Shown: positions 8,105-62,045 of the stretch, piece after piece | Position numbering within the stretch: position 1 is the first letter of the stretch | Layout of the letters: every line of letters starts with the position of its first letter | Assembly: GCA_048013815.1 (NCBI GenBank) | Contig: CM106586.1 | Coordinates: 24,118,001 to 24,182,000 of the forward strand | Direction of reading: 5' to 3' | From: Setoptus koraiensis | Lineage: Eukaryota; Animalia; Arthropoda | Length of the DNA: 64,000 nucleotides | The notes under the pieces: generated by a model | Seen by the model: only the letters and a program-made list of their open reading frames with translations | The model's database searches: none | Told to the model about the DNA's origin: nothing | Program-made: the position numbers and the translations under genes

Positions 8105-11434
<3,330 letters not shown>

Positions 11435-16870: not shown

Positions 16871-20200
<3,330 letters not shown>

Positions 20201-32887: not shown

Positions 32888-32932
<45 letters not shown>
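32888..32932. repeat. (AAC)15 microsatellite
   Basis: Direct reading. Confidence 0.9.
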
Positions 32933-32933
<1 letters not shown>

Positions 32934-33102
32934 GCGGCAACCATTAGGCGAGATGAGAAACAAATTTTACAAACATTCTGTCCACTTGATTCTTTCCTCT
33001 TTTTGACCAACGCAAACACACACACAAATACAAATGGGCGCTTGTGTTGTCGTTGTTGTTGCTAGTGGGGCCAATAAATTTCATGCCTTAGTGGGCACAA
33101 AT

Positions 33103-33106
<4 letters not shown>

Positions 33107-33144
<38 letters not shown>
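33107..33144. repeat. (TG)19 microsatellite
   Basis: Direct reading. Confidence 0.9.
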
Positions 33145-33145
<1 letters not shown>

Positions 33146-33965: not shown

Positions 33966-34037
33966 CCTCTCCAAATGCCTCTCCAAATGCCTCTCCAAAT
34001 GCCTCTCCAAATGCCTCTCCAAATGCCTCTCCAAATA
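33966..34037. repeat. 12-bp minisatellite (CCTCTCCAAATG)x6
   Basis: Six consecutive units, the last ending in A. Confidence 0.92.
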
Positions 34038-35757: not shown

Positions 35758-38700
35758 GTTATGTAACATAAGTTAGGTAACTGTAAATACGATATGATGA
35801 TACAGATAGTGTGATGACTGCAAATATGAAAAGGTTACAAATAGACACAATTACAACAACCACTGGCCCAATCATTTGGCAATCATTGGTTGTTGTTGGC
35901 TCTCAATTGGTTTATTGTATTTCTGCAAACTATTTGTGGCAAACAAACTATTTGTGCACGTAATACATTTGTTGTTATGAGTTATTATTGTTACTACGAG
36001 TCACAGTTATAGTTACAGTGATACCAGCCAGCTAGCAGTGAGTAGTCACTGGCGAGATAGTATAGCCACCACAAATTGGGCTGCCATAGCTCACTGTTAC
36101 ATCACAAAGCACATACTGCTGTATCAATTGATCAAACATGACATTGCGCAACATGCCTGCCAGCATAACAAGACATGACAAGACAGGTGGCTATCGTAGG
36201 GGCGCAACGTGGCCACTAAAACGACGCCAACGCACAACAAACCGTTGAACGTGTCAGTGGCGTTTGGCACGTGCAAAACAAGTTGTGTGTGTGTGGCCGG
36301 CGGCGGTGGCGGCGGCCAACTTGTCACTGATAATGCAGCTTGTTTTTATTTTACTGTCTGTTTCAGCTTGTTATGTAATGTATGTATTGGTCAACACAAC
36401 ACAACACAGCACAACATTACATAACATTGCTTGTTGTTTGTTTGTGCCAACAACAAGCTACGTTTTGTGATGTTATGTAACGTTGTGTTTGTTGTAGCTG
36501 TTGTGAGTTAGTTAGTTGAGTCAGTGGGCCGCTTGCATCCCAATTGCAGTGGCCCAATCGGCGAGCTGGCCAAAGCGGCAAAAGTGAACAATAACAAGTG
36601 AATAATAAGTGACCACTTGACCACAATTCATTATGCACGCTGTTCACCATTTTGCTGTATGCTGTTTGCTGCACAGCTCACACACACACAATACAGCTCA
36701 CACAATTCATTCAGCATGTCGCAGCTTTACCGGTAACACATTACGTAACATAGGTGACAGTATCACAGTAACAAACGGCGACAATGTTTTGCAACAAGTT
36801 TGTGTGTCATTTGTTGTGTCGTCGTTGTCGTGCCGCTCATTGGTCAAAATAAGCACGCGCACAACAACAGCTGCTGCTGTGAATATCATTACTGTGCCAA
36901 TGACAACTGTCATTTCAAAGCAACTATTGTTAACTGTGTCACTGTCATTGACACATGTCATTGTCAGCTGTTGTTTACAAGTTAACTTGAGCAACTCATG
37001 TAAAACTAATTGCGTCTATCTCGCATGCCCATGGCCGCTCGCTTCAATCGTTTTATCTGGCTCAAACTGGGCTCTTCTTCTATTGATGCCATTCAATATC
37101 AAGTTGCTATTATGTAACCAACAAACAATGTAGCTACATGTGAAAGTGTGAAAGTGGCCCCTTGTGGTCAAATATTGCTTATTGGCTATCAGTTATCGGC
37201 TATCGGGCTACTAACGGGTTATGTAACGATGTGTGCTGGCCCCATTCTCACAAATTGTAAGCTCACAAATTGTTAGCTCATAAATTGTGTTTGTGTTTGG
37301 CCAGGGATGAAATCGAGCAGTTATAGCAGTTGCAATGTAATCATTGTTGCCTCTGCACCTCGTACAGGTATGTTGTGTGTCACAACTGTCTATCACAATT
37401 GTTTGTCTGAATGGATTTTTGAATGGTGACGCATAATTGTGAGCTCACAATCATAGTCTGTTGTCGATTGTAAGTGTGTAAGGTAAGTGTGTATCAGATG
37501 CAACGATAGACAATTCAAATTTATAGTTCCACTGTGATTGTGCGACAGCCACAACATAACGCCTACATCTTATCTGACTTGATTGCCAGCTGATGTGAGC
37601 GCTTTAATTTACGCTTTAATTACATAATGACATTATCCAAATAACAATTATCTCCACTTATCAAGATGGACTTTTCATGCGTGCATTTGAGTCATTTCAA
37701 TTGCCATTTGAGACAACACTGTCCATCTACTCAGCAATCAGCTGTCTGCTGTCTGTTGTCTGTTGAATTGATTATTTAATGATAATGATGATGCAATTCA
37801 CTTTAGATGCATCGCTCGTGTATCCCTCAATAAGCTCGCTGTCACTCACATCTCTGTCGCTCTCAATCGCGCCCCTTTGGTCTTGCCAAGTAACAGTGAC
37901 TAACTGAGGCGAGTAGCTCACTGGCCACTGACAATGGCCAATACAGCTTGCGCGGCACACTTAGCACGCTTAATTTAATTAAATGATTGTTGAGTTTGTG
38001 AGTTCACACAAACTCAACAATGCATAATATTATGTAACTGTTAGTGAATTCGTCGTTAATTTGGCTTGACACTGTGACAATACTCAGACAATACTATTGC
38101 ATTGGCCACTGACTGCGCACAGTGCGAATATATATAAATATATATTACATGCATATGTAATAAGCAGCTACAAACTGGCAAACTAAAGCACCAGCTCAAA
38201 TCTATTACATAATACATTAGATATTGAGCGATGCCCATTGCAAATATAACATTATTAGAGCTTGCTGTAATTAAGCTTGTTGCCTTGATGCCATGGTGTT
38301 ATTATACAGACATATTGATATGTTTACAATACAGTGGCGCACAAGTTGTTTGTTTGTTTGTTGGTTTGCTTGTTTGTTTGCTTGCTTGCTCGTTGGGTCA
38401 AATGAGCCAGCACAAATGCGGATATTATTTGAGAATATTCTCGGCATGCAAGTTTGTCAGCAGTTGCTTTGGTTTGGTTGGTGCCATTGTGACTGGATCG
38501 CTCTAATCAAGGCTGCATTGGCATTGTGTTATTTAACATTGGCATTTTATCATATAGACGGATGACCGCTCAAATAAAGTTAACACTCACTGTCCACTTG
38601 TAATGAGTAACATTCATTAGCATAATGCCATGAGACATTGTCAAGACATATGAGTCATGACAGTGTTAATATGCAAAACAGTTGTTGTGGGCGAGCAGCA

Positions 38701-39203
38701 TCTTTGCAATAATGAGTCCATTCGGATAATAGCGAAACAGTGGTGAGAGTTGGGCCCACTTTCCACTACAAACTCACCTAAGTCTCTCATCTCGTATCAC
38801 ATATACACACATTTACATGGTGAGCCTACGAGTGTATTTACTGTATGTTGTTGCTGTTGTTGTTGTTGTTGTTGCAACATGACATTTGTGTGCCAGAAAA
38901 GGGGCAATCGTTAAATTGTCAGCATTATGAATAGTAGCCACTGTTGTCGTTGTTGTTGCTGCTGCTGCTGTTGTTTGGCAGCGACGTAACGGGCCGATTG
39001 AGGCCAGTTGAACTGCCAAACAAGCGAACAGTAAAAAATAATGCAAACAAACAAACACTGAGCATCCAACAGCAAACAAATAGAAAAGTCGCTTGTGGCT
39101 GTCGGTGTAGCTGTCGGTGTTGCTGTTGGTGTGCTCAAACGGGCACAGCAACTGCCAAGAGTAAATGCAGTTCATGTGCATCAGTGGCCATCAGTTACAT
39201 AAC
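35758..39203. promoter_or_regulatory. Homotypic cluster of 11 RTTAYGTAAY (PAR-bZIP / D-box type) sites, candidate intronic enhancer
   Basis: Exact matches (either strand) start at 35758, 36370, 36416, 36472, 36740, 37109, 37218, 37619, 38029, 38204, 39194. The motif is seen in the sequence; enhancer function is inference. Confidence 0.55.
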
Positions 39204-42200
39204 GGCACAACGACAACAACAGCCACAACAACAACGACAGCGACAACAACAACGACAGCAACGACAACGACAGCCACAAGCGACAACAACAACAGTTGTT
39301 AGCCAGTTACGAGCAGCGAGGCACCTTTGCTCGCTCTTTTGTTGGCCAGCTCGTGTGCCATACGTGTCTATACGTGTCTAAACGTGCGGTCTGACAATTG
39401 CGACAGAAACAATGAGATGATGATGCTCGCTTGCTAATGCAAATGATCTTGTTGTAGCTGCTATTGCGTTACTTTTTACAATACAACAAGCAAACTTAAG
39501 TGAAGTGAAGTGCCAGTCAAGTGCCAAGCTCGCCAGGCTATTCACTGCGGGCAACGAGCGCATTAGACTCAGTGCACAGAAAAGCGCGTTACTCAGCTAT
39601 TTTTACGTGTCGTGCACACTTAGACGATTAAATTGCTTTTATTTGGGTAGCTGCTATTTGGGTATTTGGGTATTCGGGTGGCGAGCTAAGCAAATAGCAC
39701 GAGCCAGCGCATGAGAGGAGTTAGGTGAAGTTGATGCAGTGATTGTTGTGTGCATCAATTGTGACATTGTTACGCAACCGACTACAACTGTTCACGCTGG
39801 CGCACTGCGCCTCCTTTTTGGCTCGTTTGGCACAAGGTGAGCACGAGGTGAGCACGAGGCGACCAGCAGCACCAATGGCAGCATTGAACCAGCAAGCGAC
39901 TTTTTGGCTAGTGAGAGGTCACCTCGATCAATCTATGCAACCTGTGCAAGCCTTGTTACGTACGCTCTCTGTGCCGTGCCACTGAAAATAGCACTATTGA
40001 TCATTATTAGATCTACGGTCGCATAGATCTAATAATGTGCTCACTGGCTGCTTGAGCCGTCTCACTCTATGCACTTGCTGCTGTGACTTACTGTGCTCCA
40101 TCCATCATGATCATTATTACATCATCTTGCTTGCTTACAATTGTTAGATGGTTGCACGTGGTTTATAGTGCGTGTTTGTTATGCTGTTTATATGGCAGTT
40201 TAGCTTTGGATTAGCACGAGTTGCTGGTGGTCAGTGGACGAGAGACGCTGGCCCAAGAACGAGGCCAAGAGTGAAGAAAAGTTTCGCCAGACACAAACGT
40301 AACAACAATGATCGCATCAATGATTATTCAGTTCATGTAGTGTTTATATAGAGACAACATTCATCAACGCCAACATCATAATCATAATCTCATCATTTCG
40401 TATCATTGCCGCTGTACACCATTTGTTGCAACTTGCAACCACCTCTTGTGTACACACTATATCCACCGTATATGTCGCTATAGATCGGCTATTGGCCGGC
40501 TACTGATCGGGTATTGGCCGGGTATTGGCCGGGTATTGGCTGGATGTGCGGCCAAAGTACGGCCAATAGCACAGTGTCCAGCCAAGGGTAGGTGTCATCA
40601 CATAATCATCGCCAGTGGAGATGCCGTTGGCTTTAGTTGGCCGGCCAGACGGACAGTGAGACAGAGAGACAGAGTAATTGGCCCAACAAGCAGCCAAGCG
40701 TCAATTTGTTGTTGTTGGCCAATGGTCGGCCAATGATCGGCCGACAAATAAACGACTGCGACACGCTCGCACTGACCGGTTGTGTCGATCAAATGATGAG
40801 ACAAGCAATCGGTTATAATATTTGCTCATCATTCATCATTTTCACTCGATAACTTGAGTTGTCGATAACTTGAGTCTGGCCCAGTTGCCGAGTCGCCGAG
40901 TCGCCGAGCCGCCGAGTCGAGCCTTGTGGCGATTGGCGCCGGCTATTGCATCACTCAAAATATAGATTATCTCAGTGGTGAGATATTATTCGAGATGCTA
41001 TTTGAGATATGTGACGACGAGCATTGCGCAATGACGCTGGCGATAGTATCATCTTGCGATAGTTGCCACTGTTGCGATTGTTGTTGTCTGGTGTCCAGTG
41101 CACAGCCACAACCACCAACAACCGCCAACAACTTGCTGCAGCTCGCCTTCGATCTGGCTCGCGTTTATCTGGCTCGATCAATCAAACACCAACATCGACA
41201 GCCCGACGCCCACACACAAGCCAAGCATAACAACAGCCAGCCAGTGGAGCGACAAACATTGCTCATCCAATAGCCTCGCACCATGAGGCTCATAGTATGA
41301 GGCTCATAGTATCATACTATTAGTATGAGGCTATTGCATCACTATTCACTATTACCACTGTAATGAGCCAATGGCCGGACGCAGCAAAATAACGCGCGTC
41401 AATCACGCCAAGATGCGTTATCACGCCACCAGCAGCGTATTGTTTAGCATTGGCAGCTCACACAATAATAATAACACACAACATGTGGGCGCCAAGATAA
41501 ATAAATAAATAAATTTGCATAACTATTGTGAGTGGCAGTGTCACTTTGTTTGCAGTTTGTTGCAGCACAAAACTGTTACTGTCTCATCACTGCAGACCAG
41601 TCATCGCTGGCAAGATCGTTTCTTGTTTTGTCGCTTTCTTGTTTGCGTCATCTCGCTCGTCATCTTGTGCAATCGTTAGGCGTGTTATTATGTAATTACA
41701 TGCATGAGGGCGCACATATCGATATCGATCACTGTGTGATTTAGCTGTAGTTTTAACATTGATGGCGAGTCTCATTGATTGGTTGTTGGCATTGCGTCCA
41801 TTGTGATGCCGACTCGCGTACAGCCAACAGCCAATAAAGCCGCTGGCCAATGAAGTCACCAGCTGATGTATCCAACACAAAAGGACAGTTTGGCAGTTGA
41901 CGCTGACAGTTGGTCGCATTTTGTATCGGACAATTGGGCAAGTTGGTATTGTTATATAGTACCATTATTTAGCACACTTATTTGGCCACCTAGCGCTCAA
42001 GTTGAAATGAAAATCTCAACATTTCTAACTTAACATGTGGCCGTCATTGTGAAGACGGTGCAATTGAAATTGAGCACTGGACTATCGGCAACTATTAATA
42101 TTAATATCGTTGCCATTGTTATAATTGCAACAATTGTTACAATCACCAAAAGAAATATCTCTTGCCAATGCGCCAGATGCGATTTATAATATAGATTGAG

Positions 42201-44376
42201 AATAGGTGAATTGAAAACTTACAAACGACAACATTGATAATTCACAATGATAATTCACAAACAATGAAAAGAAAAAGAAGAGCGAGCTGGCAGCTTTTGA
42301 GCCAACTGGCTTACAAGTTGTTAGATTAAATTAAATTAAATCAGATTATAATTATAATCAAAATTAAATCTTGTCCACTGGCGGTGTCTAGCGGCAACAA
42401 CAACAACAACTGTTTGCTACTTGATGGTGGTCACGTAACGGGAGCCAGATCACTCACCTGTTCGTGCTACCAGCAACGTGCTGCACTCTGCACAGTGGCA
42501 CAATGACCACATGCCACTGGTGATATGATACCAGCAATATGTCTTGTCAACTATGAACCAACTTCATACCAGCTGATATGTGGATATTCTTTCATTATGT
42601 TTGGTCTTTTTGAGTTGACAGTTGTCAGCTGACTGGAGTGTCAGCTTATTCACGCTGAGCGCATAAGTGAGCGCACATGCGATGAGTGGGCCCACTTATC
42701 CGTTAACTCAACTCAAGCCAAGTGAGGCCCCTTGTTCCGGTATTGTGTCGCGTTGGCTTTGTGTGCGCGTGCTTGCGCGTGTTATAACGTGTTATGAAGA
42801 GTGTGTCATTACATAAGTCACCACTTGGTTTGGTGAGTGCACTATACTGGCCAATACCTGATACTGAAACCTGCTTGCTGGCTATGTCTGGCTATACACT
42901 CACTTATATACACTGGCTATAAGGGCGGCCAGATAAATTGTTGTAGGCAGTGCAAAGTTGTTGTTGTTGCTGTTGTTGTTGTTTGAGTGAACTTGACCAA
43001 CAAAGATCCGAAGGGGGCCAACAAACAATCGAATTGACAAAGGGGGCACAAAGAGCAAAGAATTGACATCCGACCAGCACACTTATTGACTTTTGGCTTG
43101 ACCCGTTATTAGCCATACGCCGCGCTCGGCACCAACTGACAACAAACTTGAGCCACTGTTTTATCGGCCACTGGCCAACAACTGAACGCCGGCCAACAAC
43201 CGAGGCCCGAGGCAACTCATTCACTTGTCACCCAAGTTGAAGTGAACAAATATGGCCGTGCCAGGTGTTGTCGTTGTTGTCGTTGTTGTCGTTGTTGTTG
43301 TCGTTGTTGTTGTCGTAATGTAAGCGATGCACAGAGTGATGCACACACTCACATGACATAACTTTTTCTGCTCGCATGATCCGTTGGCGCGGCTTCTTTC
43401 GGCGTTCTTCGGAGGTTCTGTCGGTTCTGTCGGTTCTGTCGGTTCTCTGGGTTTGCTTGGTTCGCTTGGCTCTTTTGGGTTTGTTGATCCGTTTGCTGCG
43501 ATATGATAGATAGCGCCAGTGGCCACGATAAAAACGAACCCAACCCAACCAAATCGGGCATCCCCAACGCACGCCCAATCGGCAACCAAGAGTAAGCCCC
43601 GTTCTGTTTGGCACACTGCACATTAAACGAGCTGGCACAGCGAGGTGTTGGGCCGGCTCGCTCATGTGCGCAAACAACAATTGAACTGCTTTTGCTGGCG
43701 TTAGTTAGTTTGGGGCCAAACTATTGTCGACATACAACACAACCAACACACAGCTAGCGACAGGGGCCAGCTAACGAACAGCCCGCGCCCGATGCTAATA
43801 CAATTTTCACTTGAATTAATCTAATTTTCGCCTCCACTGAGCCCTCTCTTTGTTTGTTTGAGCATGCTGACTCACTGACCATTGCTCACTGTTGGCTGGT
43901 CACTCGCTGGCTGTTGGCTGGTCACTCACTGGCCAGTTCTCAATGGTCAGTCGCTGGCTGGCTCTCAATGTTCGGCCAGTTAAACGGACATCACGGATAA
44001 TATCAGCGGCAGCAGATTGTTATTGGCCGTTTCATCAATTGTGTACCAAAGTGTGTCCACCAGTAACGGGACTTAGTTAGCTTAGCTGACCACCAGACGC
44101 TAACGCTTGGCTAGAGAATGTTGAGCTTATTCATTATTATTATTATTATTATTATTATAATATAAGCAACCATGTCGAGCATTCAAGCAAATCAATGCTC
44201 ACACGCACGCACACATTTTGGCGCTATTTCCATTTAATTTCCACTGATGACATTGTTCTCTGCGAGCGCCTGATCACTTATAACTTTATTTATAACTTAT
44301 ATATCCATATATATACTCAATGATCGGCTGCTGCTTGCCATCGGCGATTGACCGCTGGTCGCGGGCTGTTGGTGAG

Positions 44377-44470
44377 CGTTGCTGGCAAGTCGTTGCTGGC
44401 AAGTCGTTGCTGGCAAGTCGTTGGCGAGCAGTTGGCAAGTAGCTGGCGAGCAGTTGGCAAGTAGCCGGCA
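44377..44470. repeat. Degenerate 14-bp tandem repeat (GCTGGCAAGTCGTT)
   Basis: Three near-exact units followed by decaying copies. Confidence 0.8.
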
Positions 44471-44850
44471 AGAGGTCGCTGTTGGCCGTAATCAGATGAT
44501 TAGTGGGGCATGAGAGTGACAGGCATCAGTCTGAGCTGGCTAACTAGCTTATCATGATATTATCATCATCAACGTTGGATCTATAACAGGCCAAATAACT
44601 ACAACGGGCCGAATAACTGTAACAGGCCCAACAACTATAACAGGCAACGACAATAATAAACAAATGTAAATGGCATTGGCCGCTCAATATATTCATTTAC
44701 ATGTAGTGGACAGCGCAACAAAGCAGCGCCCAAATAAAGATAGAAATCAGATGAGATGAGATGAAATGAAATGAGAGCGCCCTTACATCACTCCTATCAA
44801 TGGCTTGTTGCGAGGCCTTATCGCTACGCCGGCCAAACAACGCCAGCGCC

Positions 44851-44942
44851 AACAACAACAGCAACAACAACAGCAACAACAACAGCAACAACAACAGCAA
44901 CAACAACAGCAACAACAACAGCAACAACAACAGCAACAACAA
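44851..44942. repeat. 12-bp tandem repeat (AACAACAACAGC), about 7.5 units
   Basis: Direct reading. Confidence 0.9.
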
Positions 44943-45627
44943 AGGGCGCCAACAAAGAATCAAGCAACAAAAGCAAATTAAGAAGTTGCCTCTCACTAGG
45001 TGGCCAGATTCTGGCTCTTTATTTATTATTATACAAGTATGACGCAAGTCTAATGAACTACCACTAACATAAATCAATGTACTTCTAGGTACAATGATGC
45101 TCGTTAGTCGTTGGCCCTTATTTCTAGTTAGTTGCTCTAGTTGCACTGGCCAGTAACTGGCAACCAAATAACTGGTTACTGGTTATGTAATATCATTGAT
45201 TGTGTGTGATCACAACTTGTGCCAGCAGCGCCGCCTATTGAAAGCAGCCACGTCTAACTTATTATACACAGAGTTAGACAGTCACAAGGTGCTAGGCAAG
45301 TGTCTATTTTGGCACTTGCTCGCAGCTATGCTTTCAATTGATGACAGGGGCTCTCATCAATTGAGAGCCATGAAAGCTGTTTAAGCGAGCAACTGGCCCC
45401 ACACAGCGGCACCACGATGACGCCTAGCTGCCATATACCACAACTATTATCGATATTAGCTCTATATCATATAGACTATATAAATCTATTACCTGACTAT
45501 ACATAAATATGCCGCAGTAAAGCTTTTGTTGTCAGCGGATTGAGCAGTGGATAAATAAATTGAATGAATAGAGGGCGCACTCTTTCTTCAAGAGGTTAGT
45601 AAATGATGATCACACTCTCGTATAGCC

Positions 45628-45694
45628 CGCATGTAGTGACTCGCATGTAGTGACTCGCATTTAGTGACTCACGTGTAGTTACTCACGTGTAGTG
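45628..45694. repeat. 14-bp tandem repeat (ACTCGCATGTAGTG-like), about 5 units
   Basis: Direct reading, units diverge progressively. Confidence 0.8.
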
Positions 45695-46071
45695 TAGGTG
45701 AATAACAGTGATTGAGTGAGCTTACTAAACTCAACTAGCTTATAGCCAGCACAAGCTATATTGGCCAGATAAGACTTGCCATCTTATTTTGGCAACTAAA
45801 TCTGCTTTTGTCAATCACCGCCAGAAGGTGGTGATATCACAATTGAGCTCTCTGTGAGTCTCATTTTGCACACTGTGAGATTGCTCTGGCGCTGGATATA
45901 TCACACATTGGATATCGCGCTACAAACAACGGCTGCCCATTGTGTCACAATGCTGCCATTCAAGCGGAACAGAGAGCGCGCCAACGCCACTAGGTGCCCT
46001 CTGTCTACCTATTGCCAGTGTTAACCAACAATTGCGAGCCTCGCTCTCTCTCTCGTAATATTGTGCCCAAT

Positions 46072-46141
46072 ATTGCCTAATACAGCCTAGTATTGCGTAA
46101 TGCAGCGTACGATTGCGTAATATAGCGCAGTATTGCGTAAT
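46072..46141. repeat. 20-bp-period array with conserved ATTGCGTAAT core
   Basis: Cores at 46092, 46112, 46132 (exact) and 46072 (ATTGCCTAAT); the spacers differ. Confidence 0.8.
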
Positions 46142-49100: not shown

Positions 49101-51118
49101 TTGATGGTGAGCGGCGGCCCCATGGCGTCACCTAACTCGTTCGCGACTTGCAAGTAAATAGTCGTTGGGCCAGCACTGAGTCGTGGCCAACCAGCAGCAG
49201 CAGCAGTAGCGACCAGCGAAACCAGCGGCCACCAGCAGCAACCAGGGCCGAGATGAGAAAGTAACGGAAGTGAGCGTGAAAGAGCACAGAGAGCAGAGGT
49301 GTCAACAATAAAAGAGAGATAACAACAACCGTTGTCGCTGTTGCGGGTCGCCTCTGTCGCTTAGGCTGGGCCCCATATAAAACACTTTCTCTGCTTCTAT
49401 TTTTATTTTTATTGTTCTGTGCTGTGTTCTCTTTTTATTGCAAACTCCTTTTATTCTGGCCAAATTGCACACAACAAGCATTGGCGTTCCAATTGGCGAA
49501 TTGCAAATTCGCGAATACGAACACGAGCAGCACAACATGTAAGAATATTTTGGATATTCAGTGCAGATCCATTTGTGCCTAGAATCTGTGTGCCAGAGAT
49601 GGAGCAGCTTAACCGGTCCATTGTGTCTAGGCCCAGACCCACGTCTAGGCTACACACAAGCAGCCCAAGAATAGCTGCTGCTGCTGCTGCAACACAGTTA
49701 TTTAAATTAGATTAGCTTGCCAGGCTGTGATTTGTTGAGCAGACAGAGTAGCTGTGAAATTGTTTTTGTCTTTTTGATAGACACTTCATGCTGCAATGTT
49801 CCAAAACGAACGCTAACTGATGGACATAATGACACATGGCCAACACAACTAAGCAAGCAGTGCCAACCAGTTGGTTGGTTGTTGAACTTGGCAACTTTAT
49901 GCACTTGGTTGTTGACGATGCAGCCTTACGACGGCCTTACAACCGGCACCAAGCTGCACTTGTCAGCACATTTGTTTTCCTTTGAAATAGGCTATTACAT
50001 AATCTGGCACCTGACGTGATCACAGTGGCAATATTTGGCATTTTGCATGCGATACATCATGAGCAGCTACAAGCAAACATCAGTACATTTATAAAATAAA
50101 TAATTAACTCGCTCTATCATATGTTGATCTCGCATATTCTATTGGCTAATTCCTTCATCCGACTGTGAATTTCAGAGTCTGAAACTGACTGGTTAGTCGT
50201 TGTGGAAACGGTTGTTTTGGCCAGTATCTGTTGGTGGTAGTTTGATGCACAAGTGTGATCGTCATCGTTGACCATCGCCAATAGCAAATAGGCCCCTTTA
50301 GGGTGATGCAAATTATTATTATTGTGCCTCAAATAATGACACACTAGATTGAATGTAAGTGTAAGTAGTCTGACAGCAAACCGTTTGTGCTGTTTTGCAC
50401 CTTGCTCTCTATTTCAAATCATTTTAATGTTTTTCCTTTGTTGTACTGTCACTATCACAGCGCGTCTCCATTGTTGTTATTTCTCAAAAATAAAATGAAA
50501 TGGCAAGAAGAAGCAATATATCATTTGCACATGTCACTGTCATTGTCATCGGCTACACCAGCAACGACGACACCGACAACACTGACAACAACAGCGTTGC
50601 GTAATAACAACTGTCTGGCGCACGTAACGCTGCCACTGTAACCAATGAATGGAATTCATCAGAGTCATTCAATAAACTCAAATGATTGAGAAGAATTTTT
50701 CCCTTCGCTTCTCTTCTCTTCTATGCTCTTTTTGTGCAAATTGATTTGCGAACAAAAAACGCCTGCCCAACAGAGAACATCATTTGCCTGACACGCCCCC
50801 AGTCAAGCTTGCAAACCGGATGGCACCGGATTCGATTGAGCGAATTCTCGGCGAATTCGGCGAACTTTGCGGATTCTCTGCGAACTCGGTAGATTCAATT
50901 GACACAAGCGCTAGCCGTAGGAATGACGGCCAATTGCTTTCTGCCAACAGCGAATTCTTGTACCTGTTCGGTTTCACCTGTCTGTTGGTTTGGAATGCAA
51001 AACATGGCACGTTGTTCTGCTTTTTGATTGGTTGTTGCCGAGCGATTGCGTTTTGAAGAGAATTCAGTTAGAATTTTACTTGTAGCAAAATGTCAGGCCA
51101 TAAGGCATGCTCAATGCC

Positions 51119-51196
51119 TGATATTCATGTGATATTCATGCGATATTCACGTGATAGTCACTTGATATTCATGTGATATTCATGTGATATTCATAG
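51119..51196. repeat. 11-bp tandem repeat (TGATATTCATG-like), about 7 units
   Basis: Direct reading. Confidence 0.8.
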
Positions 51197-53330
51197 ATGA
51201 ATAGAGCGCCGCTGAGGCCATGTATTTAATTTGATGTGATGCCGAGCAAGCAACGGATGTGCTTTGCATGGGGATCTGGCGAAATTGTTGGCCACAGAGC
51301 AGCCAAGAATTGGAGCATTGTGAGTGTTGTGAGCATTGCGATTGTGTCAGCAGTGAGGCCAGTTGATAGTAACAAGAGACTGGCCACATAATGGCTGGCG
51401 ATAGTATTTTGACGCTTTTAGTGGCTCATTATGGGCGCGCCATAAATCCGGTTGGCGAGCAAGTGAGCGAAATTACGACAAAGAGATCTCACCAAATATG
51501 TGACACAATGTATGATTGATACCATAATCAATAAGCCGTGATATACATAAATAGCGTGCAGATGTGGGCTGTGATTTTGTTAGTGTTAGGTGACACTGAC
51601 AAAATATCTATGTATGAAAGAGAACAATGGCCCGCGTTGGGTCAATTGTTGGCACACTTACATCACTGGTCACACCATATATGACGTAATAAAGATGCCA
51701 AGCCAGCGCCTAGTGAGCCTGAGAGTGCGAGGTAGCCAGCGGTTGACTATATCGCGGGCCATGAGTCATGGCAACGGAAACGGCACGAGATGAATGTGTC
51801 AATTGGCGCGCTTGTGACACAAAGATGATCGCACAACAATAGATAATGGTCACTTGTATCGCTGGCCAGTGACAGCGGCGCCAACACAAGTGAGCAGAGA
51901 GATGGAATTTCTCTGCGTTTCAAACATTTTGCACATTCTTCAACTTGCTTCGCACTCGAGTTTGTTCTCTCTCAACGACGAGTTGGCCCAGCGACAATTT
52001 GGTTAGATTCAAACAATAGTTTACAGTTTTCTCGGTTTGTCTCAATGTGTACGCCGGCCACAGCCAACAGAAAGATAGTTGTCAAGTTGGCCGGTAGTGG
52101 CCAGCAGCAGAGCACAGATAAGCTGACCAGTGCGAGATCGATATCAGTTGTGCGAGTCACAATTTATAGCTACAAGCCACACACTGCCAGCACACTGCCA
52201 GCACACTGGTCAGCTCGTGCCCGGCGACAGGCCGCCGGCCAGTGCGAGGCCTGAGCAGTGGCCAGGCGGGGGCCAAACGTTAAAAGTGGGGCCAGAAGCT
52301 AATAACGATGATACACGCTGGTGGCCGGGCAATGAAGCACCAATGAAAATCATCGAGCCATGACAAGCCAATGACGACACAACTGTGCCATTGTGCCGCC
52401 GATACAATTGAGCGAAATTCCCCACATGGGGCGCAGAAATAATTTGCAAAAGTTTGTTGGCAAACTTTGAACGTTGAAGAATGAACGTTGACAACAAATT
52501 GACAAAATTGCCCGCTCTCCTTCTCTTGCGAGTTGCCAGCAAAAAATTTCTCTTTCGCCCTGGCTGCTCGTGGCTACTCGTGGCTACTCGTGGCTTCTCT
52601 TAGCCGCTCGTGGCTGCTCGTGGCATCGTTCGTCAAGTGCTTGGCTGTGCAGTGAGTGCACAGTACAGTAAACTGTTGGCCAGACGGTGCACGATATAGA
52701 CGACAATGCGCGCCAATAAGGGTGATTGGAAAAATGGTATGCACTGTTGCACAAACGATTTAACTGGCTGGCCACTAGTAGAGCATAAATGACACAAATT
52801 ACTCTCGACAACACGACTCAAACTGACCATTTGGGGCCCGGTCCAGTCCACGAGTCAGTGTGTGTGATGTACAGCAAACGTAACACAATTTGTAATGTGT
52901 TCGGCCGTTGCAATTGCCGTATTCACAATAGTTGGGCTGAACTTTGAAATTTGTGGCGCTTGCAAACAAGCTTGCAAATGTCACACAAATTTGCATACAT
53001 TGAGCCGGTGCCATAATGCCAAAGGTATTTAGCAATAAAATCATCAATCATGTTGGCGGCTTGCCAAACACGACGATTTGTGTCAACTTGTAGCCATCAC
53101 CGACACAGTGGCTGGCGAGCTCAGTAGCCCGGTTGGTTTGTTTGTGCTCGCAACAATTAATTAATTAGAGGCTAGCGCAATATGAGCGCCACTGGCCACA
53201 GGTGAGTGGCACATTTGTAAACTGTGCCAAACTGCACATTGTTACGGGCGTGTAAAATGGTGGCAATTGCAAGCTGGCTGCATTGCACACCAGCCAGCTT
53301 TCGATGCCGACCAGTATGAGTTGTATATCC

Positions 53331-53394
53331 GGGTATTTCGAGATATATCTGGGTATTTCGAGATATATCTGGGTATTTCCAGATATATCTGGGT
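53331..53394. repeat. 20-bp tandem repeat (GGGTATTTCGAGATATATCT), about 3 units
   Basis: Direct reading. Confidence 0.85.
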
Positions 53395-56300
53395 GTAGCC
53401 GGCATATTCACATGTGTGTTACGTATAAGAGCGTTCTCTATGAATGATGAAATGCGCGGCCCAGGGCGAGTGCGCAATATCCGGTGATGATGATAAAGCG
53501 TGGCAAGCAGAGTAGCAAGGCAAGCATGCGAAATTGATAGAGAACAGTTGCTAGTGCAATGGTTGCGCAACATACGCTTTACACTTGCTGCGACAATTAG
53601 CACGAGAAGAGAAAATGATTGTGACAGACGATTCATAATGTGCGCTCCACTTGTTCGATTTGTTTCTTGCCACTGGCCGCCATACTACACACTATATAGT
53701 ATTACGCAATACATGTGTAGTATATATGTAGTATGTAGTGTGTGTGTGTGTTACGTAACGGCATATAACACTGTGCGGGGGTGCATGGGGGCACGCTGTG
53801 GTATGTGAGAGTGTGTGAGGGTATGAGGGGCGAGGGGGCGAGGCAACAGCGCGACAAACAAATAGTTTAATTCGGACGCAAAAGGCAGAGAATATTTAAT
53901 CCGTGTTTTGCTGCAATTGCTCAGCTTGCGCCAGCCTGTTGTGGTCCGGTGCTTATGGCCGGCAGTTTGTGCCAGGTTTGCAGCGGGCTCGCGGATGGGG
54001 CGCGGATGGGACGCGGACATGGTGCGGATGAGGCGCCCAGACGGGACAGTGGCATGGGCAAGTGCTGCTGGGGGCCAATTGTTGGCGGTTGGCCAGTTGC
54101 TCGGTCAACCGCCAGTTCATTATAAGTGTCGCTCGGGCTGTTTGTGTTTTGCTGTTTTGTGCACAAGTGCCCATTTGGTCAGCCTCGGCCGGCGAGCAGA
54201 GTGTCGGATCTGTGCATCACTGATTGTCGTTGCGAGTGGCCCCAATTGTTGGTTGCCGGTTGGCAAACTTTGTTCCAGCCAACAGTGTGTGCAGACAGAG
54301 ACAGAGAGAGAGGCGCTGGCCAGTTTCACTGCCAGTGGCACAGTGGCAAGTGGCACAAAAAGAGCCAAATCTAACAAAACGAGCCAGCCTCAACAATGGC
54401 GGATGGGGCCCGATGAGGGGCGCAAGAGCAAAAAGAGCCACAAACACAATTATGACCATGTGCGAGCTAATGCACATAAGTCATGTCTGTGTTATTTGCT
54501 TGAGCAGATACTCTCATCCGATTCTGGCTTTGGCACGCTGGTCACTTAGGCACACTGTCCAATGGACAGTTGGCCAGAACAGTTACTGTGCACAGTCAGT
54601 GGTTAGTGAGCGGATAATAACACTGCGCATTGCGCACAAACTAAAAGCTAACGGTGCCCCAACTGTTAACTGTTACGCAACGCTTTTAGGCAACGCACAC
54701 AACAGCGCGAGCCATCAAGCTTATCGAGCTTATTGCGCAACCTTGCGCCATAAGCTATAAGCTCGCATATGAACTTACAGCTTGGCTTGGGCAGCCAGTA
54801 ATTTATGCACACACACTCTGCTAGTGACTCTAGTGTCTGGTCAACGTCATCACGATGAGCACACTTACTTTCCACGGGTGTCTCGTCTCCACTCGTGTCC
54901 AGTGTTGTCCAGTGCTGTCCAGTTCTGTTTAGTGCCGTCTAGTCAAGTCTAGTGCTGGCCCCCAACCGGACCAGACCCAAGTGGCGGTCAGTTTGGGGCC
55001 AAGTGTCGAGCAGATTACTCTGGCTGGATAATTTCAGCTGTTATGTGCTATAACGACATGCAACAACGACATGCTGCAACCGTATGAACACGGCAAGCAA
55101 AATGTGAAAATAACAATGTGTGCGGCCGGCCAAAGACAAACGATGACCAGACAAGTGTCTTTTTCGAGCGTTATATTTGTTGTTGCGAACAAGCTCATAC
55201 ATAAATAAATACAACAAATCAGTCAGCTTGCCAGCAACTGTCAATGACGCCCACGCGAACCGACTCGTTGGTCAGCAACACACAAAAAACACGACAAATG
55301 GTACAGAAAACAAGCAAGAATGCAGCCTCTCCAGTTTATTCATGCCGCTTGCGACTTATGAATGCAGCTTGCCAAAGTGACCCAAACTCGATTTGATTTA
55401 ATTTGATTTAATTTTATTTTTCATTTAATTTGCTTCGCTCTGATTGCTGGCGCAGTCACCTCGATTTCTGGCACAGTGGCGTAATTTGCACAGTCCGTTT
55501 GTTTTGTGCAGAGCCAGTAAACAAATGACAGGACGAAATCTCTCATTGATCTCTGCGTCGAGTCCAATCTTGAATCGGTGAAACGTGTAAACGCTTAATG
55601 AGTCCAGCAACACATTTCATATAACAATGGCATGTTGCGTAACAGAGGCCCGTCATCATTGGCAGTGAGCGGATGTCGATACGGTAAGATGGCGCCATTT
55701 TTAAGTTTCTAACAATTGACAATTGTCAATTGTCATTCGACAATTGTAAGCAATCGATCTTAATGGAACTAGCCGCTATGCAACGACGAGCACAGCACCA
55801 CAGCAGGCCCACAAACGAGGCCCGATCAAGCCAGTTGGCAAGCAACTCACAAGCAACAAAGTGAGCCAGCGCAAATGGCGCCTCTGGTGCCCGGTGGCGC
55901 GACTATTCCCATGGTTCGCTCGTCGTTGTCGTGCTTTTTGTTTGGGCTGCCAGAGTTTGTGTCCCCCGAGTGAGTGCAAGTGTTGGCAAGACAAAATCAG
56001 CAAGACGAAAATTCATGGCAAACAGGCGAGAGGCAGCAGAAGAGCAGTGTTAGTTAAACAAGTGACAGCACAAATAGTGTGGCAGACAGTTTATTCTTGG
56101 TGGCAACAAACAGGCAAAACAGGCAAAACGAGCGAAACAAGCGAAAGAATTGCAAGAAACGAGACAAAGCGAAGAAACGAGCCGAAGAACGAATTCTCTG
56201 GCCTGTGTGTTGCCAGTTCGAACTGCACCGTCGATCGGTATCATCGTTCGCAGGAGAATCAGTCATCTCGTTGCATAACACTGAAAGAACAAGCTTGTTG

Positions 56301-59300
56301 TTGTTGTTGTTGTGCTGGCCGTAAAAAACAAGCTGCATCCAAAGTAGCCTAGGTACCCCCATTTGCTTGTACCGCTATGGCGTGTGTAGTTGCCCGCGGG
56401 ATAATGTGGCTTAAATGTGTGCTTGTGCATATATAAACAAAAGGTGCCACCACCAGTGGCCCGGGGCTAGCGCGCCAAACGTACAAGTGCCTGGGGCCCC
56501 GCTAGAAATTAATGGTTTAGCTCGCTCATATCAGACACGTTGGAAATGAATTTATGAAATGTGCAGTGCTCATTTATGCACAATTTGCTTGTTGTGCTAG
56601 CCAAATGTCAATGGCTGGCAATGGCACACAATAGGCACAGCAGACGCGAGACTGGCTCAATGAGGCACAACTATGTGGATGAGCTAGCCAAAACGTGGTG
56701 TGCAGATCGTTTTGTGCACGGTCGTGTCCATTGTTTGTCAGTCTAGTCACTGCTGCCCGCTTTGGTGTGCCAGCTATGCCAGTTCAGTATCAATATCATG
56801 GCGAGTCGCCAGCACACCAAGATATACGTAGCGAGAGAGGGAGAGGGAGGCAGAGAGAGAGGGAGAGGGCGAGGGAGAGAGAGGAAGCCAGAAATGAAGA
56901 AAATGATGACTTGATGCACAAAACTAGCTAAACAAACTAACACTAGATAAGATTAGATAAACTGGGGCAAATAACACACGACACAACTCTCGTCCACTGT
57001 CAGAATAATATAATAACGCAGCCAGGGAAATAATACTAATCAAGTCTAAGCCTGAGGCCATGCTTGCTATTTTGGTGTGACAAACAGAAAAAAGGGAGAA
57101 AATGCGAGATTGCGAGCCGAATGCAGCCAGAATGCGACTGCTGACAGGTGCCAATGGACTGGATTAAGTAGCCGTACCTATATAAACCGGCCCCATATAA
57201 GTGCGCCATATCCCCCCGACAGCAACATTGAGCCAGCCAGCAATATCAGTCAATAATAAATGATGAAATACAGTAAATCAGCATAATGCCAATGCGAGCG
57301 ACGTGGCCAATTTAGCCATGCAACAGTTAATGTAAAGTATTGTCGCATGCCTAATTAATGTGATAAATACATTAATTTCAAATGGATCGCTTCTATTGAG
57401 CTTGCCACGAAGCAGGCCACAAGCTTGTTCATTTGCTCACTGTGTTTAGAAATCAATTTCAATCTTTTGTCGATTATTGGTCAGCAGCGCTGATTATTGC
57501 ATAATAATTGATCACGGTGGTTCATTTGCGACACAAATACCAATATAATGGAATCATATGTATCAACGATTATATCAACGAATGACCAGTGCCGATGCCG
57601 GCCAATGTCGTTGCTGGCTTGTTTCGCTCGTTGATAACAAGTTGTTATACGCAATTGAAAGCCCGAATGCGGCCACATGAGCCGATGGCTGTGCTCACTT
57701 GTCACTGACAACTTGTCACAGTACCGGTGCCAATATTTATCCGGATATATAAGGATATAGATAGATATATACTGATATACACGGTCATTAGCGAGCACAA
57801 GTTTGATTGGAATCAAATTGATGTGCATCGAGAGCAAACAACTGTGACACTTGTGAGACGAATAGTTACAATTAACAAGTTGCTTATGCTCGTACTCACA
57901 ACTTGCGAGCCACAAGCCAGAGTTTGTGTCGAGCAAGCGATTGTAATGGCAGGCCAGAGTTTAATTTGAGCCGGGCATTATCATTGAGCTATTGGGGCTG
58001 TCTGGTTGGGCAAGAACGCGGCTATCCGAAGAAGATGATAGCTGCAATTTGGGCATCGCTTAGGAACAACAAAATTGTTTATAACTTACAAGTGATCCCA
58101 GAGTGTGTGTGACGCTAATGAGCATTAGCTGTTGGGCCCCAATTCGGTTGGCTCAAGTGAGCAGCTGATTCAATTGGTAGTTGTGCCATAGTTATAAGTT
58201 GCCAGAAATGCTTGACCGACGGGTTATTGTTGGCATTGCAATTATTGCATGTGTGTCGCTTGTGTTGCTGGTAGCAACCGTTAGGCAGCAAACGTAATTT
58301 GCCTAAACCATTTGGAGCGACTAAAAACAGATTGCTCCTTCTCTGTTGCTCAATTATGATTACGCAACTACCGTACTGATGATTACGCTACCAGATGATT
58401 ATTACCATCATCATAGGCTACGTTACGTAACTGGTCTGACCAAGTGATATACTGTGTTTATCAGTCACAAGCCAGCTTGTATCAATTCAGTTAGGTTTGC
58501 GTTTATACTGACCATTAAATTGTTGTTTGCTGCACTGCAACAACAACAACAACTACTACTGCTACTACCACTACTTCTACCACTACACTACAACAAACGG
58601 TAAAGCACCAACTGGTGGCGCTGCTGCTGCTGCTGCTGCAATTATTATTATATTTATTTTATTTAAATGATTACCACTGGCAACTGGGCTGCAATCTACA
58701 TTTGTGTTTGTGTCACACAAATTGTGCAGATCGCAAACACTTTCACTTTCACTTTTACTCACTCACAACTAACTAAACTGGCAATCAACTAACAACTGTA
58801 AACCAAACCAAACCAAACCAAACTGCACAGTCCAAAAGTCAACTGTCTGGCCTCATCTTAAATTGAAATGAAATAATTGGCCTCAAAGTGGTCACGTTAC
58901 TCACTAAATGCACGCGCACACTAACTAATGAGAGGGATTCACTTTTCACGATTTCGTCGCTTTACCAACAAACTTTGCCTAATGACAGATCTGGCAGGCA
59001 GAGATCGTTGAAGCAAATCAAAGACTTGTCTGCCCAATGGCAAGTCTGTCCACTTGTTCATGTGTACAATAGGCAAACAGTTACGTAAGTCACCATGGTT
59101 GTCGGTCATACACACAAGTGCAAAAGTGATGACCAATGCGCCTAATGATTGAATAACACTAATAACTGTATACACTAAATCGCCAGCCAGTGGCAAGCTC
59201 GAGAGTTGCAATTGAGTGAACCGAAAACAAAAGCCGACGGCCCACTGATCCGCTTATAGCTCATGTTGTGTTGCGATCCATTGTGGCGTTGTGATCCATT

Positions 59301-59691
59301 CTCGTGTTGTGATCCATTGGATCCGTGCACGGTATCTAGTGGCCATGCTATGGCTGTTATAGACACGCAATGATGATATGTGGATATGGCTGGATATGGC
59401 TGATAGGCGCATGGATATATGAGATATATCTGGATATCTGTGATCGACTTGCTGCCAGACTCTTGCCGGCCGACTCTTAGCGCCACACTCTGGCTGCCAG
59501 AGGCCAGGGGCCAGAAGCGAGAAGCGAGAGGCCAGAAGCCAGCAAACTAATAGACTAACAAAGAGCCAGCAATAACAGTGTTTGTGTGTCATGGTTGGCC
59601 GTTGATAGAGAGCAGCGAGAGTGTTCAAACAATTCAATCATCTCGCTTTTGATATGTGTGATGATGCAACTTATCACTACTACTGTTACTC

Positions 59692-59810
59692 CAACTGCAA
59701 CAGCAACAGCAACAGCAACTGCAACTGCAACTGCAACTGCAACTGCAACTGCAACTGCAACTGCAACTGCAACTGCAACTGCAACTGCAACTGCAACTGC
59801 AACTGCAACT
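59692..59810. repeat. Hexanucleotide microsatellite (GCAACT), about 20 units
   Basis: Direct reading; a few GCAACA variants at the left end. Confidence 0.92.
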
Positions 59811-62045
59811 ACAATTGCGATAGCTTCATAAGAGCAAAGCCAAAAGTATCATCGCTGTCATATATTACGTAACTAGCAGCGGATTTGGATTTGCTTTGGC
59901 CGACTAACAGTTGAAAGTTGTCTTATTATTATTACTATTACCATTGAATGGCGTCGATTGGTTGTTGTTGTTGTTGGCATTATTTTTCGTGCCCATCAGC
60001 TGCTGTTTCGGTGAGCTTCTGTCGGCTTGTATTGGCCCTATTGGCTTGCTGGTGTGTTGGCCAGAACGGCCAAACAGCAACAAACTAACTGAGTGAATGA
60101 AATGACAAAATGACCGAAATGACCGAAATGACACACAACAGAGACACCGCAACAACACACAAGCAGTTTGCCAATCGATAGCAGCAGCAGCAGCCAAACT
60201 CATAGCTCATCGACAACAATCGCCATTGGCGCCCAATGTGAGCAAGTCGCGAACGACGCTAGGCTCACCCGCGCCCGTTTTCGCTTTCCCGTTTTGCTCG
60301 CTTTCTCGCTTTCTCGCTCCAATGTCTTGCTCGCTGACAATGTGAGATGGGCACACCGAGGTGCGACACATACAAACATCATGAGCCCATCATCCATCAT
60401 AATTCCTCTGGCTCTCACTTCTTCTATCCATTTGTTTCTCGGCTACCAGCGCTAGTTCCATCATTGATCAGTAGGGGCTCTCGCTGCACACATATAGACA
60501 CATACGCACTACAACACGTATAAACAACACATATACACGGATATACACAAACATATCGACACTCACACACTGTTAGAAAGTCGTCTTGTTGGCTTAGTTA
60601 CATAATAACACATACAGCAAACACTTTGCAAAATACTTTGCACATATAGAGCACGATTTAGCCCTTTTTGTCCCATCGGTCAGTCTTGTTCTGCCACTCA
60701 TACCACCGATATCAATGATGCAACATCCTGGCGCAACAATAACACACTGTCTTGAGCCAATCATCATAATGCTGCTGTTGCGTCATATCAACCAATCATA
60801 TCATACTTGACTATAACTAAATAAACACTCTCAGCCGATCAGCTGATAATTGTAATTAATTTCTTGCTCTTTTTATTTGCTGTTAGCGGGTTGTTTTTAG
60901 TTTGGTGCCACTGCTAATATCTGGTTGGCCCGCAATTTGGCGCGCTGAGCTCACGATTGTCAGCCAACAATTTATTCTGCTCGCTTCATTCTCGTTGTTG
61001 GCGTCATTTTGTGGGGCTGCGCTGGCTGCGAAAACTAAAAGTTGCCTAGCAATAGCAAAAGAGATACAAGAAACTTTGCGGAGATGTCAGAATTGATTTT
61101 AAAAACACGTGACACACTGTGTTGCGACAACAGTGCAGCGCAAAACTATAGTTTTATACTGTTACTTGTGCCACAGTGTGTACCGCAACACAGCAAGTGG
61201 CCTGGTATGTTACATAACATGATGTTATATAACACAAAGTTATGAAACTGGCCATGACAAAGACAAAAAGAGAGAGCAAAGCGTCATCTTTGTGTATCAG
61301 TTGTTGTTCACTTTTTCACTTTTCCTTTTTTTCTCTTTTTCACTTTTTCACTTTTTTATCAACTCTCTCGCTCTCTGGTCACTGCAATCGCAAGCAACAA
61401 CCATGTTGTGTGGGCCGCAGCAACAACACAACAATATACTTGACTTGACTTAAATTGACCAACCAAACTTACAACTCACAAACTCAAACTAGCGAGCGCA
61501 CAAGCCCGTTAGTAGTAGTAGCAATTATGTGAGGCGTCATATCTATGAATTAACGTCACCGGATGATGATTTAATAATGGGTAACAAAGCCTGAAACAAA
61601 CTGAAATGGGGCCAGTTGCTATTGGTGCGCCGGCCAGCGCATTTGAGCCAGCAAATAACTGCAACAATAACTGTAGGTCTCGTCTCATCTAATCTAATGG
61701 TGTCCACTAGATGACAAAAAGACAAGAAATCGACCGACCGCAAACAATGCAATTTCATTTTATCTTTTTGTTTGTCTTTTAATCTTGCCTCGTCTCGCCC
61801 TCTGTTCATTCTGTCTCATATCTGTCTGTTTGTCCGTCCGTGCCACTATCTTGTTGTAACTGTATATATGTATTTGTTTTTCACAAACACAAACACAAAT
61901 ACATCACATAATATTATATCTAGCTTCTGTTATTTTTGTCGAGGCTCGACATTGCTCACTTGCATTCGTGTGTGTCCATACAAAACAAACAACAATGACA
62001 ATGTTTTTTCTCTCTCTTTTGTTACGTCACATCCGAGCTGCTTAC

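Follow-up and report, generated by a model that had tools for sequence, protein, structure and literature searches.

Closest described systems

The sequence RTTAYGTAAY is the extended form of the element of the PAR-bZIP and E4BP4(NFIL3)/Vrille factors, which has TTAYGTAA as its core, and in Drosophila the clusters of the gap-gene factors include those of Giant, a PAR-like bZIP protein. D-box sequences have been ranked from DBP/E4BP4 ChIP-seq, and TTATGTAA, TGATGTAA and TTACGCAA are among them (PMC6687812). In Daphnia, the developmental gene Dsx1 is under clock-independent control of a Vrille/E4BP4 consensus site in its upstream enhancer (PMC5667737). As for the mites, the sequenced genome of the eriophyoid A. 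lycopersici contains vrille, Clock and cycle, and no period, timeless, cryptochrome or Pdp1 was detected in it (PMC7738191); the supplements of that paper held no usable bZIP or Dscam entries.

The locus described here lies in a 64-kb stretch of a gall-mite genome (the window, that is, the whole stretch of DNA that was analysed). It comprises a 30.7-kb gene-free non-coding domain (31201..61900), in which there are 34 sites of this bZIP family (RTTAYGTAAY, RTTACGCAAY and RTTGCGCAAY). The domain is on the 5' side of a Dscam-like gene of the minus strand, a neuronal adhesion gene, ahead of its first recognisable exon. The density of the sites reaches 1.11/kb, as opposed to 0.21/kb across the remainder of the window, and the 5.4-kb non-coding SERCA spacer has none (0 sites). 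The site excess is confined to the non-coding domain adjoining the Dscam-like gene and is specific to half-site combinations of the PAR/E4BP4 type, which occur independently of orientation and do not constitute a repeat family.

The domain and its neighbouring genes

The body of the Dscam-like gene extends over 21737..31154 on the minus strand, as mapped by Pfam and tblastn, with the cytoplasmic tail at 21.7-23.1 kb, the FN3 exons at 23.8-26.0 kb and the Ig exons at 26.2-31.2 kb. Its Pfam matches are FN3_DSCAM-DSCAML_C, fn3 and I-set, and the protein search placed arthropod Dscams as its closest relatives; the exons were searched singly and not as a joined spliced model, and the exon at 23767-25335 retrieved distant Dscams only. 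The initial annotation had taken the domain for a Dscam intron, which is an assumption, since the domain is 5' of the first recognisable exon; a search upstream of 31.2 kb with queries devoid of Ig1-5 found no Dscam exons, and neither Ig nor FN3 exons were detected in the gene-free domain. Its far boundary is set by a minus-strand ORF of 265 codons (61930-62727), which has a hydrophobic, signal-peptide-like stretch and for which the searches gave no Pfam family, no relatives and no Atlas match, with low recognition; it could be a gene in its own right or else the first exon of the Dscam-like gene.

In composition, the gene-free domain has a GC content of 43-49%, compared with 32-42% in 1-32 kb, and according to the tandem repeat finder it is rich in micro-arrays of 8-22 bp. 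No Rfam families were found in it, and no bZIP gene was seen in the 64-kb window.

Arrangement of the sites

Every one of the 20 RTTAYGTAAY starts that had been listed between 35758 and 61218, together with the two at 23244 and 30040, proved to be an exact match. The most conspicuous part of the map is a dense homotypic cluster at 35758..39203, made up of 11 of the 20 exact sites of the domain (starts at 35758, 36370, 36416, 36472, 36740, 37109, 37218, 37619, 38029, 38204 and 39194). Under uniform placement in the domain, the scan statistic gives P about 2e-4 for 11 sites inside 3.45 kb, and the proposal of a homotypic cluster of 11 sites within 3.5 kb is thereby borne out. Variants are found within or beside it at 35652, 36097 and 40117 (TGATGTAA), at 36143 (ATTGCGCAAC) and at 39769 (GTTACGCAAC).

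Further along the domain, scattered exact sites span 41687..50003 (41687, 45182, 49994 and 47299, the latter being the perfect palindrome GTTACGTAAC), with variants in or near that span at 41023 (TTGCGCAA) and 50596 (TTACGCAA). A tandem array of 20 bp x3.6 detected by the tandem repeat finder (46071..46142) bears three ATTACGCAAT sites at 46092, 46112 and 46132, that is, with a 20-bp spacing. There is a second sub-cluster at 53562..55643, composed of 53562 and 54732 (TTGCGCAA), 53701, 54672 and 55634 (TTACGCAA) and 53750 (GTTACGTAAC), and the distal sites at 58359..61218 are 58359 (TTACGCAA), 58422 (GTTACGTAAC), 59864 (ATTACGTAAC), 60597 and 61209.

The initial annotation described the sites as dispersed and non-tandem, which is correct in regard to their unrelated flanks and not entirely so in regard to the arrays: site 35758 sits in a micro-array of 14 bp x2.6 (35746-35781), and about 4 of the 34 sites, and no more, are array-borne. 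Outside the domain, the two exact sites reported next to Dscam donors (23244..23253, whose minus strand reads GTGAGTTACATAAT, and 30040..30049) do overlap putative GTGAGT donors, as inferred from the sequence, although the one at 30040 is missing in the related-species contig considered below. Contrary to the statement that there were no sites in 1-21 kb, exact matches are present in the SERCA coding sequence at 10104..10113 and, as a mirror copy on the other palindrome arm, at 18192-18201; the arms are 100% identical, and this pair is probably one chance coding match counted twice.

Size and specificity of the motif excess

In the whole window, exact RTTAYGTAAY occurs at 24 distinct positions, equivalent to 29 strand hits; 100 dinucleotide shuffles of the window average 1.83, and none exceeds 6. 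The 20 positions of the gene-free domain account for 25 strand hits, and Markov models of order 0-3 self-trained on 32-62 kb expect 0.44-0.71; in 35.7-39.3 kb there are 12 strand hits and the same type of model expects 0.12-0.30. From a self-trained order of at least 5, the expectation climbs only through the memorising of the sites, which makes it uninformative. The excess does survive higher-order backgrounds, because training the models (order 0-6) exclusively outside the gene-free domain gives an expectation of 0.65-1.24 for those 25 hits. This agrees with the initial claim of an excess, and a compositional artefact was rejected up to order 6. In sum, the count of perfect sites in the domain of ~30 kb is about 30x the chance expectation.

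The motif also emerges when no consensus is imposed. In an unbiased 8-mer ranking of 32-62 kb, TTATGTAA (17 occurrences vs 0.98 expected), GTTACGTA (11 vs 0.38), TTACGCAA (11 vs 1.13) and TTACGTAA (6 vs 0.25) come directly below the microsatellite words, with TTATGTAA and TTACGTAA as the highest-ranked non-microsatellite 8-mers of the gene-free domain. A one-mismatch scan yields enrichments of 54x for TTACGTAA, 15x for TTATGTAA, 13.5x for TTGCGTAA and 4.6x for TGATGTAA. The enrichment is restricted to variants interpretable as combinations of bZIP half-sites (e.g., TTACGCAA, with 13.5x, and TGATGTAA, with 4.6x), the remaining one-mismatch variants stay close to expectation with 0-5 sites apiece, and TTATGCAA is barely enriched (2.2x). 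Furthermore, R...Y flanks, which the 8-mer core search does not demand, accompany 20 of the 23 TTAYGTAA cores (p about 7e-10), 10/11 TTACGCAA and 4/5 TTGCGCAA. Among the control motifs, the CRE, AP-1, TAATTA, E-box and octamer words stay at 0-2x, and the Zelda word CAGGTAG does not occur in the gene-free domain.

The orientation of the sites is balanced (9:8 and 4:7), which makes an RNA-level signal unlikely. Beyond the motif, the flanks are unrelated: a blastn comparison of +/-80 bp returned trivial overlaps between neighbours and one low-complexity match of 18 nt. An origin from a repeat or mobile element was rejected due to this lack of similarity between copies beyond the motif, both in that comparison and by eye.

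Comparison with related species and variation

The search with the Ig exon at 30040-30501 led to one related-species contig (L001, 4.4 kb), whose alignment spans 29.7-33.0 kb, a stretch without the family sites of the domain, and shows conserved non-coding islands of 85-96% identity. Site 30040 is not conserved, as L001 shows GGTGAGCT------CTAATC there, and the sole site in the upstream part of L001 has no counterpart in the window. The runs on other organisms (X9 and X11) matched only a CAA microsatellite. Within the species, 13 SNVs and 4 indels were found in 5.96 kb and none of them falls in a site, with only about 0.3 expected to do so.

Proposed function and alternative explanations

The interpretation that we favour, with a probability of about 0.65, is that 31.2-61.9 kb is a cis-regulatory landscape with many sites for bZIP proteins of the PAR/E4BP4 class, most likely serving the adjoining Dscam-like gene. 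The domain would offer about 34 high-affinity candidate sites to a dimeric factor of that class, each consisting of two inverted GTAAY (less often GCAAY) half-sites that abut at a central YG. The likeliest binder would be the orthologue of Vrille/NFIL3 or else a different PAR-like bZIP, for example that of Giant. So many near-optimal sites might result in a high, cooperative or buffered occupancy, in such a way that the concentration of the factor would set the repression or the activation of the enhancers of the domain. Part of the sites would have been born by local tandem duplication, a form of site birth described in flies (PMC3188502), which the site-bearing micro-arrays at 35746-35781 and 46071-46142 would match. 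Binding by a bZIP protein, the identity of the binder, Dscam as the target and the sign of the regulation are all points that we infer from the DNA sequence, and the Dscam-like gene is the presumed target by adjacency only. Taken by itself, the locus is a well-supported candidate for an enhancer cluster of a Dscam-family gene. Few long gene-free domains are left in the streamlined genome of this mite, and those that remain are likely functional.

What the site excess says about this particular gene depends, nevertheless, on how far it extends. If it were genome-wide, the sites might not be gene-specific enhancer inputs, and an abundant bZIP could instead be a general mark of all the retained long non-coding domains, much as Zelda or GAGA motifs mark many fly enhancers; it would serve in pioneering, boundary formation or silencing, with no input specific to Dscam. 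This is a rather unlikely alternative, in spite of the spread of the sites along the whole 30 kb and not in one module, given that they crowd together strongly at one place (11 in 3.45 kb, P about 2e-4) in a way that resembles discrete modules. It overlaps with the regulatory reading preferred here, and the two are not mutually exclusive: the use of the motif at this locus is probably one instance of a genome-wide use in the long non-coding domains of the mite, and not a device peculiar to Dscam or to the clock. A stronger form of the idea, in which the motif and its GCAA half-site variants would be the dominant signature of essentially all the retained long non-coding domains, under one Vrille/PAR-like global regulator or marker, is conceivable and somewhat doubtful. 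A neutral origin, with the sites as remnants or footprints of mobile elements, a seed prone to duplication or some peculiarity in the composition of the non-coding DNA of this genome, and no binding site at all, could be suggested by the two site groups located inside short tandem arrays and by the micro-arrays of 8-22 bp that fill the domain. However, only about 4/34 sites lie in arrays, the flanks are unrelated, the Markov models trained outside the domain expect about 1 site up to order 6, the other non-coding DNA of the window has no sites, and neither a footprint nor a composition model predicts half-site-type variants or the R/Y flank rule, all of which makes such an origin improbable.

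The remaining alternative is a circadian D-box output, in which Dscam would be rhythmic through a PAR activator and the E4BP4/Vrille repressor. The sequence of the sites is certainly that of the D-box consensus, and the eriophyoid A. lycopersici retains vrille, Clock and cycle (PMC7738191). However, that species has yielded no period, timeless, cryptochrome or Pdp1 (PMC7738191), and clock-independent functions of Vrille in development are described too (PMC5667737), so that we regard this output as very improbable and the clock linkage put forward in the initial annotation as doubtful. Were the motif to dominate the long non-coding domains, this would also bear on the role of the clock-associated Vrille in a lineage reported to be without per, tim and cry, where the clock has perhaps been largely lost.

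Comparison with known systems

If one perfect bZIP motif dominates the long non-coding domains, it would provide a simple handle on the regulatory organisation of an extremely streamlined animal genome, and a former clock factor of the Vrille/PAR-like type would play a role comparable to that of the fly Zelda or GAGA factor. In that case, the likeness to the Zelda TAGteam and GAGA systems would be the presence of one short motif across most regulatory domains, although the mite motif belongs to another factor class (bZIP), and we know of no pioneer activity of Vrille or PAR factors in arthropods.

The 10-bp sites of the mite are identical to the D-box, including the R/Y flanks and the palindromic pair of GTAAY half-sites, and the variants tolerated in the mite, TTACGCAA and TGATGTAA, are also among the ranked D-boxes (PMC6687812). 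Unlike the classical D-boxes, which are single or few near the promoters of clock-output genes, there are 34 in one 30-kb domain of the mite, and TTATGCAA, the top mouse D-box, reaches only 2.2x in it. With the homotypic clusters of developmental enhancers (PMC4621482, PMC3188502), the domain has in common the many copies of a motif in a few kb of non-coding DNA by a developmental or neuronal gene, the independence of orientation and the partial origin by local duplication. It differs from them in that the mite sites are unusually perfect, as exact 10-mers with one dominant motif, and belong to a candidate enhancer region of a non-model mite. Finally, whereas the enhancer of Daphnia Dsx1 has one functional site validated by mutagenesis and the mite locus has dozens of predicted ones, both bring together a non-insect arthropod and the Vrille/E4BP4 consensus.

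Motif excess and clustering

In a pattern search of the 64-kb window, RTTAYGTAAY occurs at 24 distinct positions (29 matches when both strands are counted), whereas dinucleotide-preserving shuffles of the window (n = 100) average 1.83, with 6 as the highest count. The initial annotation, which proposed exact sites of this motif as an enhancer cluster placing Dscam under clock-linked or PAR-bZIP developmental control, placed 20 starts between 35758 and 61209 and two more at 23244 and 30040, all of them correctly; its statement that 1-21 kb is devoid of sites does not hold, since two are present, at 10104 and 18192. These are mirror images, one in each of two inverted SERCA arms (8105-11434 and 16871-20200), and, as the arms are 100% identical, they amount to coding sequence counted twice. 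Each arm spans 3,330 nt and carries an intronless 1009-codon SERCA-type ORF, the two ORFs arranged head to head with 5.4 kb of spacer between them, and more diverged inverted matches (90-96%) lie outside them, at 7776-8058 versus 21209-21495.

Analytic Markov models of orders 0-3, trained on the region itself, predict 0.44-0.71 strand matches in 32-62 kb versus 25 observed and, for 35.7-39.3 kb (training on 32-62 kb), 0.12-0.30 versus 12. Self-trained models of orders 5-7 come near the observed count solely through having memorised the sites, and for that reason the models were trained instead on the window minus the domain, i.e., the gene-free non-coding stretch at 31.2-61.9 kb beside the minus-strand Dscam-like gene, with one SERCA arm taken out. 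These predict, for orders 0-6, 0.65-1.24 strand matches versus the 25 observed, so the significance survives a higher-order background and the excess is confirmed as robust.

The site family formed by RTTAYGTAAY, RTTACGCAAY and RTTGCGCAAY counts 34 members in the domain (1.11 per kb) versus 7 in the remaining 33 kb (0.21 per kb), with TTAYGTAA cores reaching 0.75 per kb in the domain, and the 5.4 kb of non-coding DNA that separates the SERCA arms has none of the family. The excess is thus confined to the domain and is not a property of the window's non-coding DNA in general. Within it, 11 of the 20 exact sites gather in 3.45 kb, a degree of clustering matched by random uniform placement in only 0.02% of 20,000 trials, in agreement with the homotypic cluster of 11 sites proposed initially. 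This sub-cluster (35.7-39.2 kb) has five variants inside or adjoining it; three ATTACGCAAT sites with 20-bp spacing form another in a tandem array at 46.09-46.14 kb, and six sites a third at 53.5-55.7 kb.

Motif specificity and sequence context

In an unbiased ranking of the 8-mers of 32-62 kb against an order-3 expectation, TTATGTAA (17 vs 0.98), GTTACGTA (11 vs 0.38), TTACGCAA (11 vs 1.13) and TTACGTAA (6 vs 0.25) come directly behind microsatellite words. A systematic one-mismatch scan returns a sharp profile, with TTACGTAA enriched 54-fold, TTATGTAA 15-fold, TTGCGTAA/TTACGCAA 13.5-fold and TGATGTAA 4.6-fold, and the remaining variants near expectation (0-5 sites each). This is the set that should be expected of a bZIP dimer reading GTAA and, less well, GCAA half-sites, and D-box sequences ranked from mouse DBP/E4BP4 ChIP-seq include TTATGTAA, TGATGTAA and TTACGCAA (PMC6687812). 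Of the domain's 23 TTAYGTAA cores, 20 have R...Y flanks (binomial p 7e-10), as do 10 of 11 TTACGCAA cores and 4 of 5 TTGCGCAA cores, a constraint seen independently, as the 8-mer core search imposes no flank. CRE, AP-1, TAATTA, E-box and octamer words occur in the domain at 0-2 times expectation, and the Zelda word CAGGTAG does not occur there. The asymmetric cores are independent of orientation (9:8 and 4:7), which argues against a strand-specific RNA signal, and no Rfam family was found.

The sites are not a repeat family either: the flanks of the 34 family sites are dissimilar, save for trivial overlaps between neighbours and one 18-nt low-complexity match. The unrelated flanks described by the initial annotation are therefore borne out; Tandem Repeats Finder does place the site at 35758, together with the 46.1-kb triplet, within short arrays. 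Such arrays (8-22-bp periods, 2-7 copies) pack the domain at 32000-62000 and include CCTCTCCAAATG x6 at 33966-34040, CGTTGCTGGCAAGT x3.4 at 44377-44423, TGATATTCATG x7 at 51119-51194 and TATATCTGGGTATTTCGAGA x3.5 at 53324-53394. The array-borne sites fit a process described in flies, in which local duplication gives rise to adjacent sites for a factor (PMC3188502), and the other short arrays may be sites of other factors multiplied in the same manner. A second over-represented motif, TTCACTTT/AAAGTGAA, is enriched 9.6-fold in the domain (9 vs 0.94) and recurs as a x6 tandem array at 61307-61356 (region 61307-61368). For GGGCCC the enrichment is 2.5-fold in the domain (11 vs 4.4) and 4.1-fold outside it (6 vs 1.5).

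Gene surroundings and conservation

The gene at 21.7-31.2 kb (minus strand) belongs to the Dscam family (Pfam FN3_DSCAM-DSCAML_C, fn3 and I-set), with arthropod Dscams as closest relatives, whose FN3 and Ig parts map to 23.8-30.8 kb (tblastn); the search was made exon by exon. Its N-terminal end faces higher coordinates, which puts the motif-rich domain on the 5' side of the first exon that can be recognised. No further Ig/FN3 exon was found in 31.2-64 kb, using homology queries that lacked Ig1-5 and an Ig hallmark pattern. A minus-strand ORF of 265 codons (61930-62727) in AT-rich DNA marks the far limit of the domain. It has a signal-peptide-like hydrophobic stretch, no Pfam family, sequence relatives or Atlas match, and low language-model recognition, and may be an orphan or separate gene, Dscam exon 1 or non-coding. 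Given the scope of those queries and the ambiguity of this ORF, the intron assumed in the initial annotation is unproven.

Contigs from two same-species samples differ over 35740-41700 by 13 substitutions and 4 indels, none of them in the 12 sites, although with only about 0.3 expected there this carries no weight; in two further organisms of those studies a CAA microsatellite is the sole match. The Ig exon at 30040-30501, used as a protein query, led to a 72% identical product on L001, a 4.4-kb contig from a related species (Logan run SRR33593474), which is colinear with 29.7-33.0 kb (exon-bearing segments 77-88% identical) and ends short of the first domain site. Where 31246-33019 is compared with L001 78-1718, short non-coding islands of 82-97% identity stand out from sequence that otherwise does not align, a divergence well suited to footprinting. 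These islands lie immediately upstream of the first Dscam exon that can be recognised and are candidates for a promoter, 5'UTR or enhancers. One perfect site in the upstream part of L001 has no counterpart in the window. In Ig-coding sequence at about 30.6 kb (30628-30635 aligned to L001 2441-2448), the window has TTACGCAA and L001 TTACGTAA, which by alignment is a GCAA-to-GTAA half-site swap. The intragenic sites at 23244-23260 and 30040-30056 overlap putative splice donors and share an identical 14-nt coding-strand string, GTGAGTTACATAAY; as the latter has no match in L001, the donor overlap is probably a coincidence.

Candidate binders and interpretation

The reading we favour (probability roughly 0.65) sees the domain as a regulatory landscape rich in high-affinity PAR/E4BP4-class bZIP dimer sites, including a true homotypic cluster, which would most likely act on the adjacent Dscam-like gene and would probably be one case of the motif being used across the genome. 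The analysis shows the excess, its specificity, its restriction to the non-coding domain, its independence of orientation and that the sites do not form a repeat family; that a protein binds, which factor it is, which gene is the target and in which direction it is regulated are inferred. Besides Vrille/NFIL3, a Giant-like bZIP is a further possible binder of the domain's sites.

A neutral, non-binding origin of the excess is improbable, since it is opposed by the outside-domain models and their expectation of about one match. Clock-linked control of Dscam through the sites, as proposed at the outset, has very little likelihood: the genome of the eriophyoid Aculops lycopersici is reported to contain orthologues of vrille, Clock and cycle, but period, timeless, cryptochrome and Pdp1 were not found in it (PMC7738191), and with this gene set, though perhaps not that of the window's species, a D-box clock output of the classical kind is unlikely. 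The same gene set makes Vrille/NFIL3 the obvious candidate for the binding factor. Vrille acts in arthropod development outside the clock, e.g., at the enhancer of Dsx1 in Daphnia (PMC5667737). That the motif has a global role, architectural or as a mark, is a minority possibility, which overlaps with the bZIP-landscape reading. As a type of feature, homotypic clustering of a known motif is already familiar; what deserves pursuit is that one bZIP motif may be dominant throughout a miniaturised genome.
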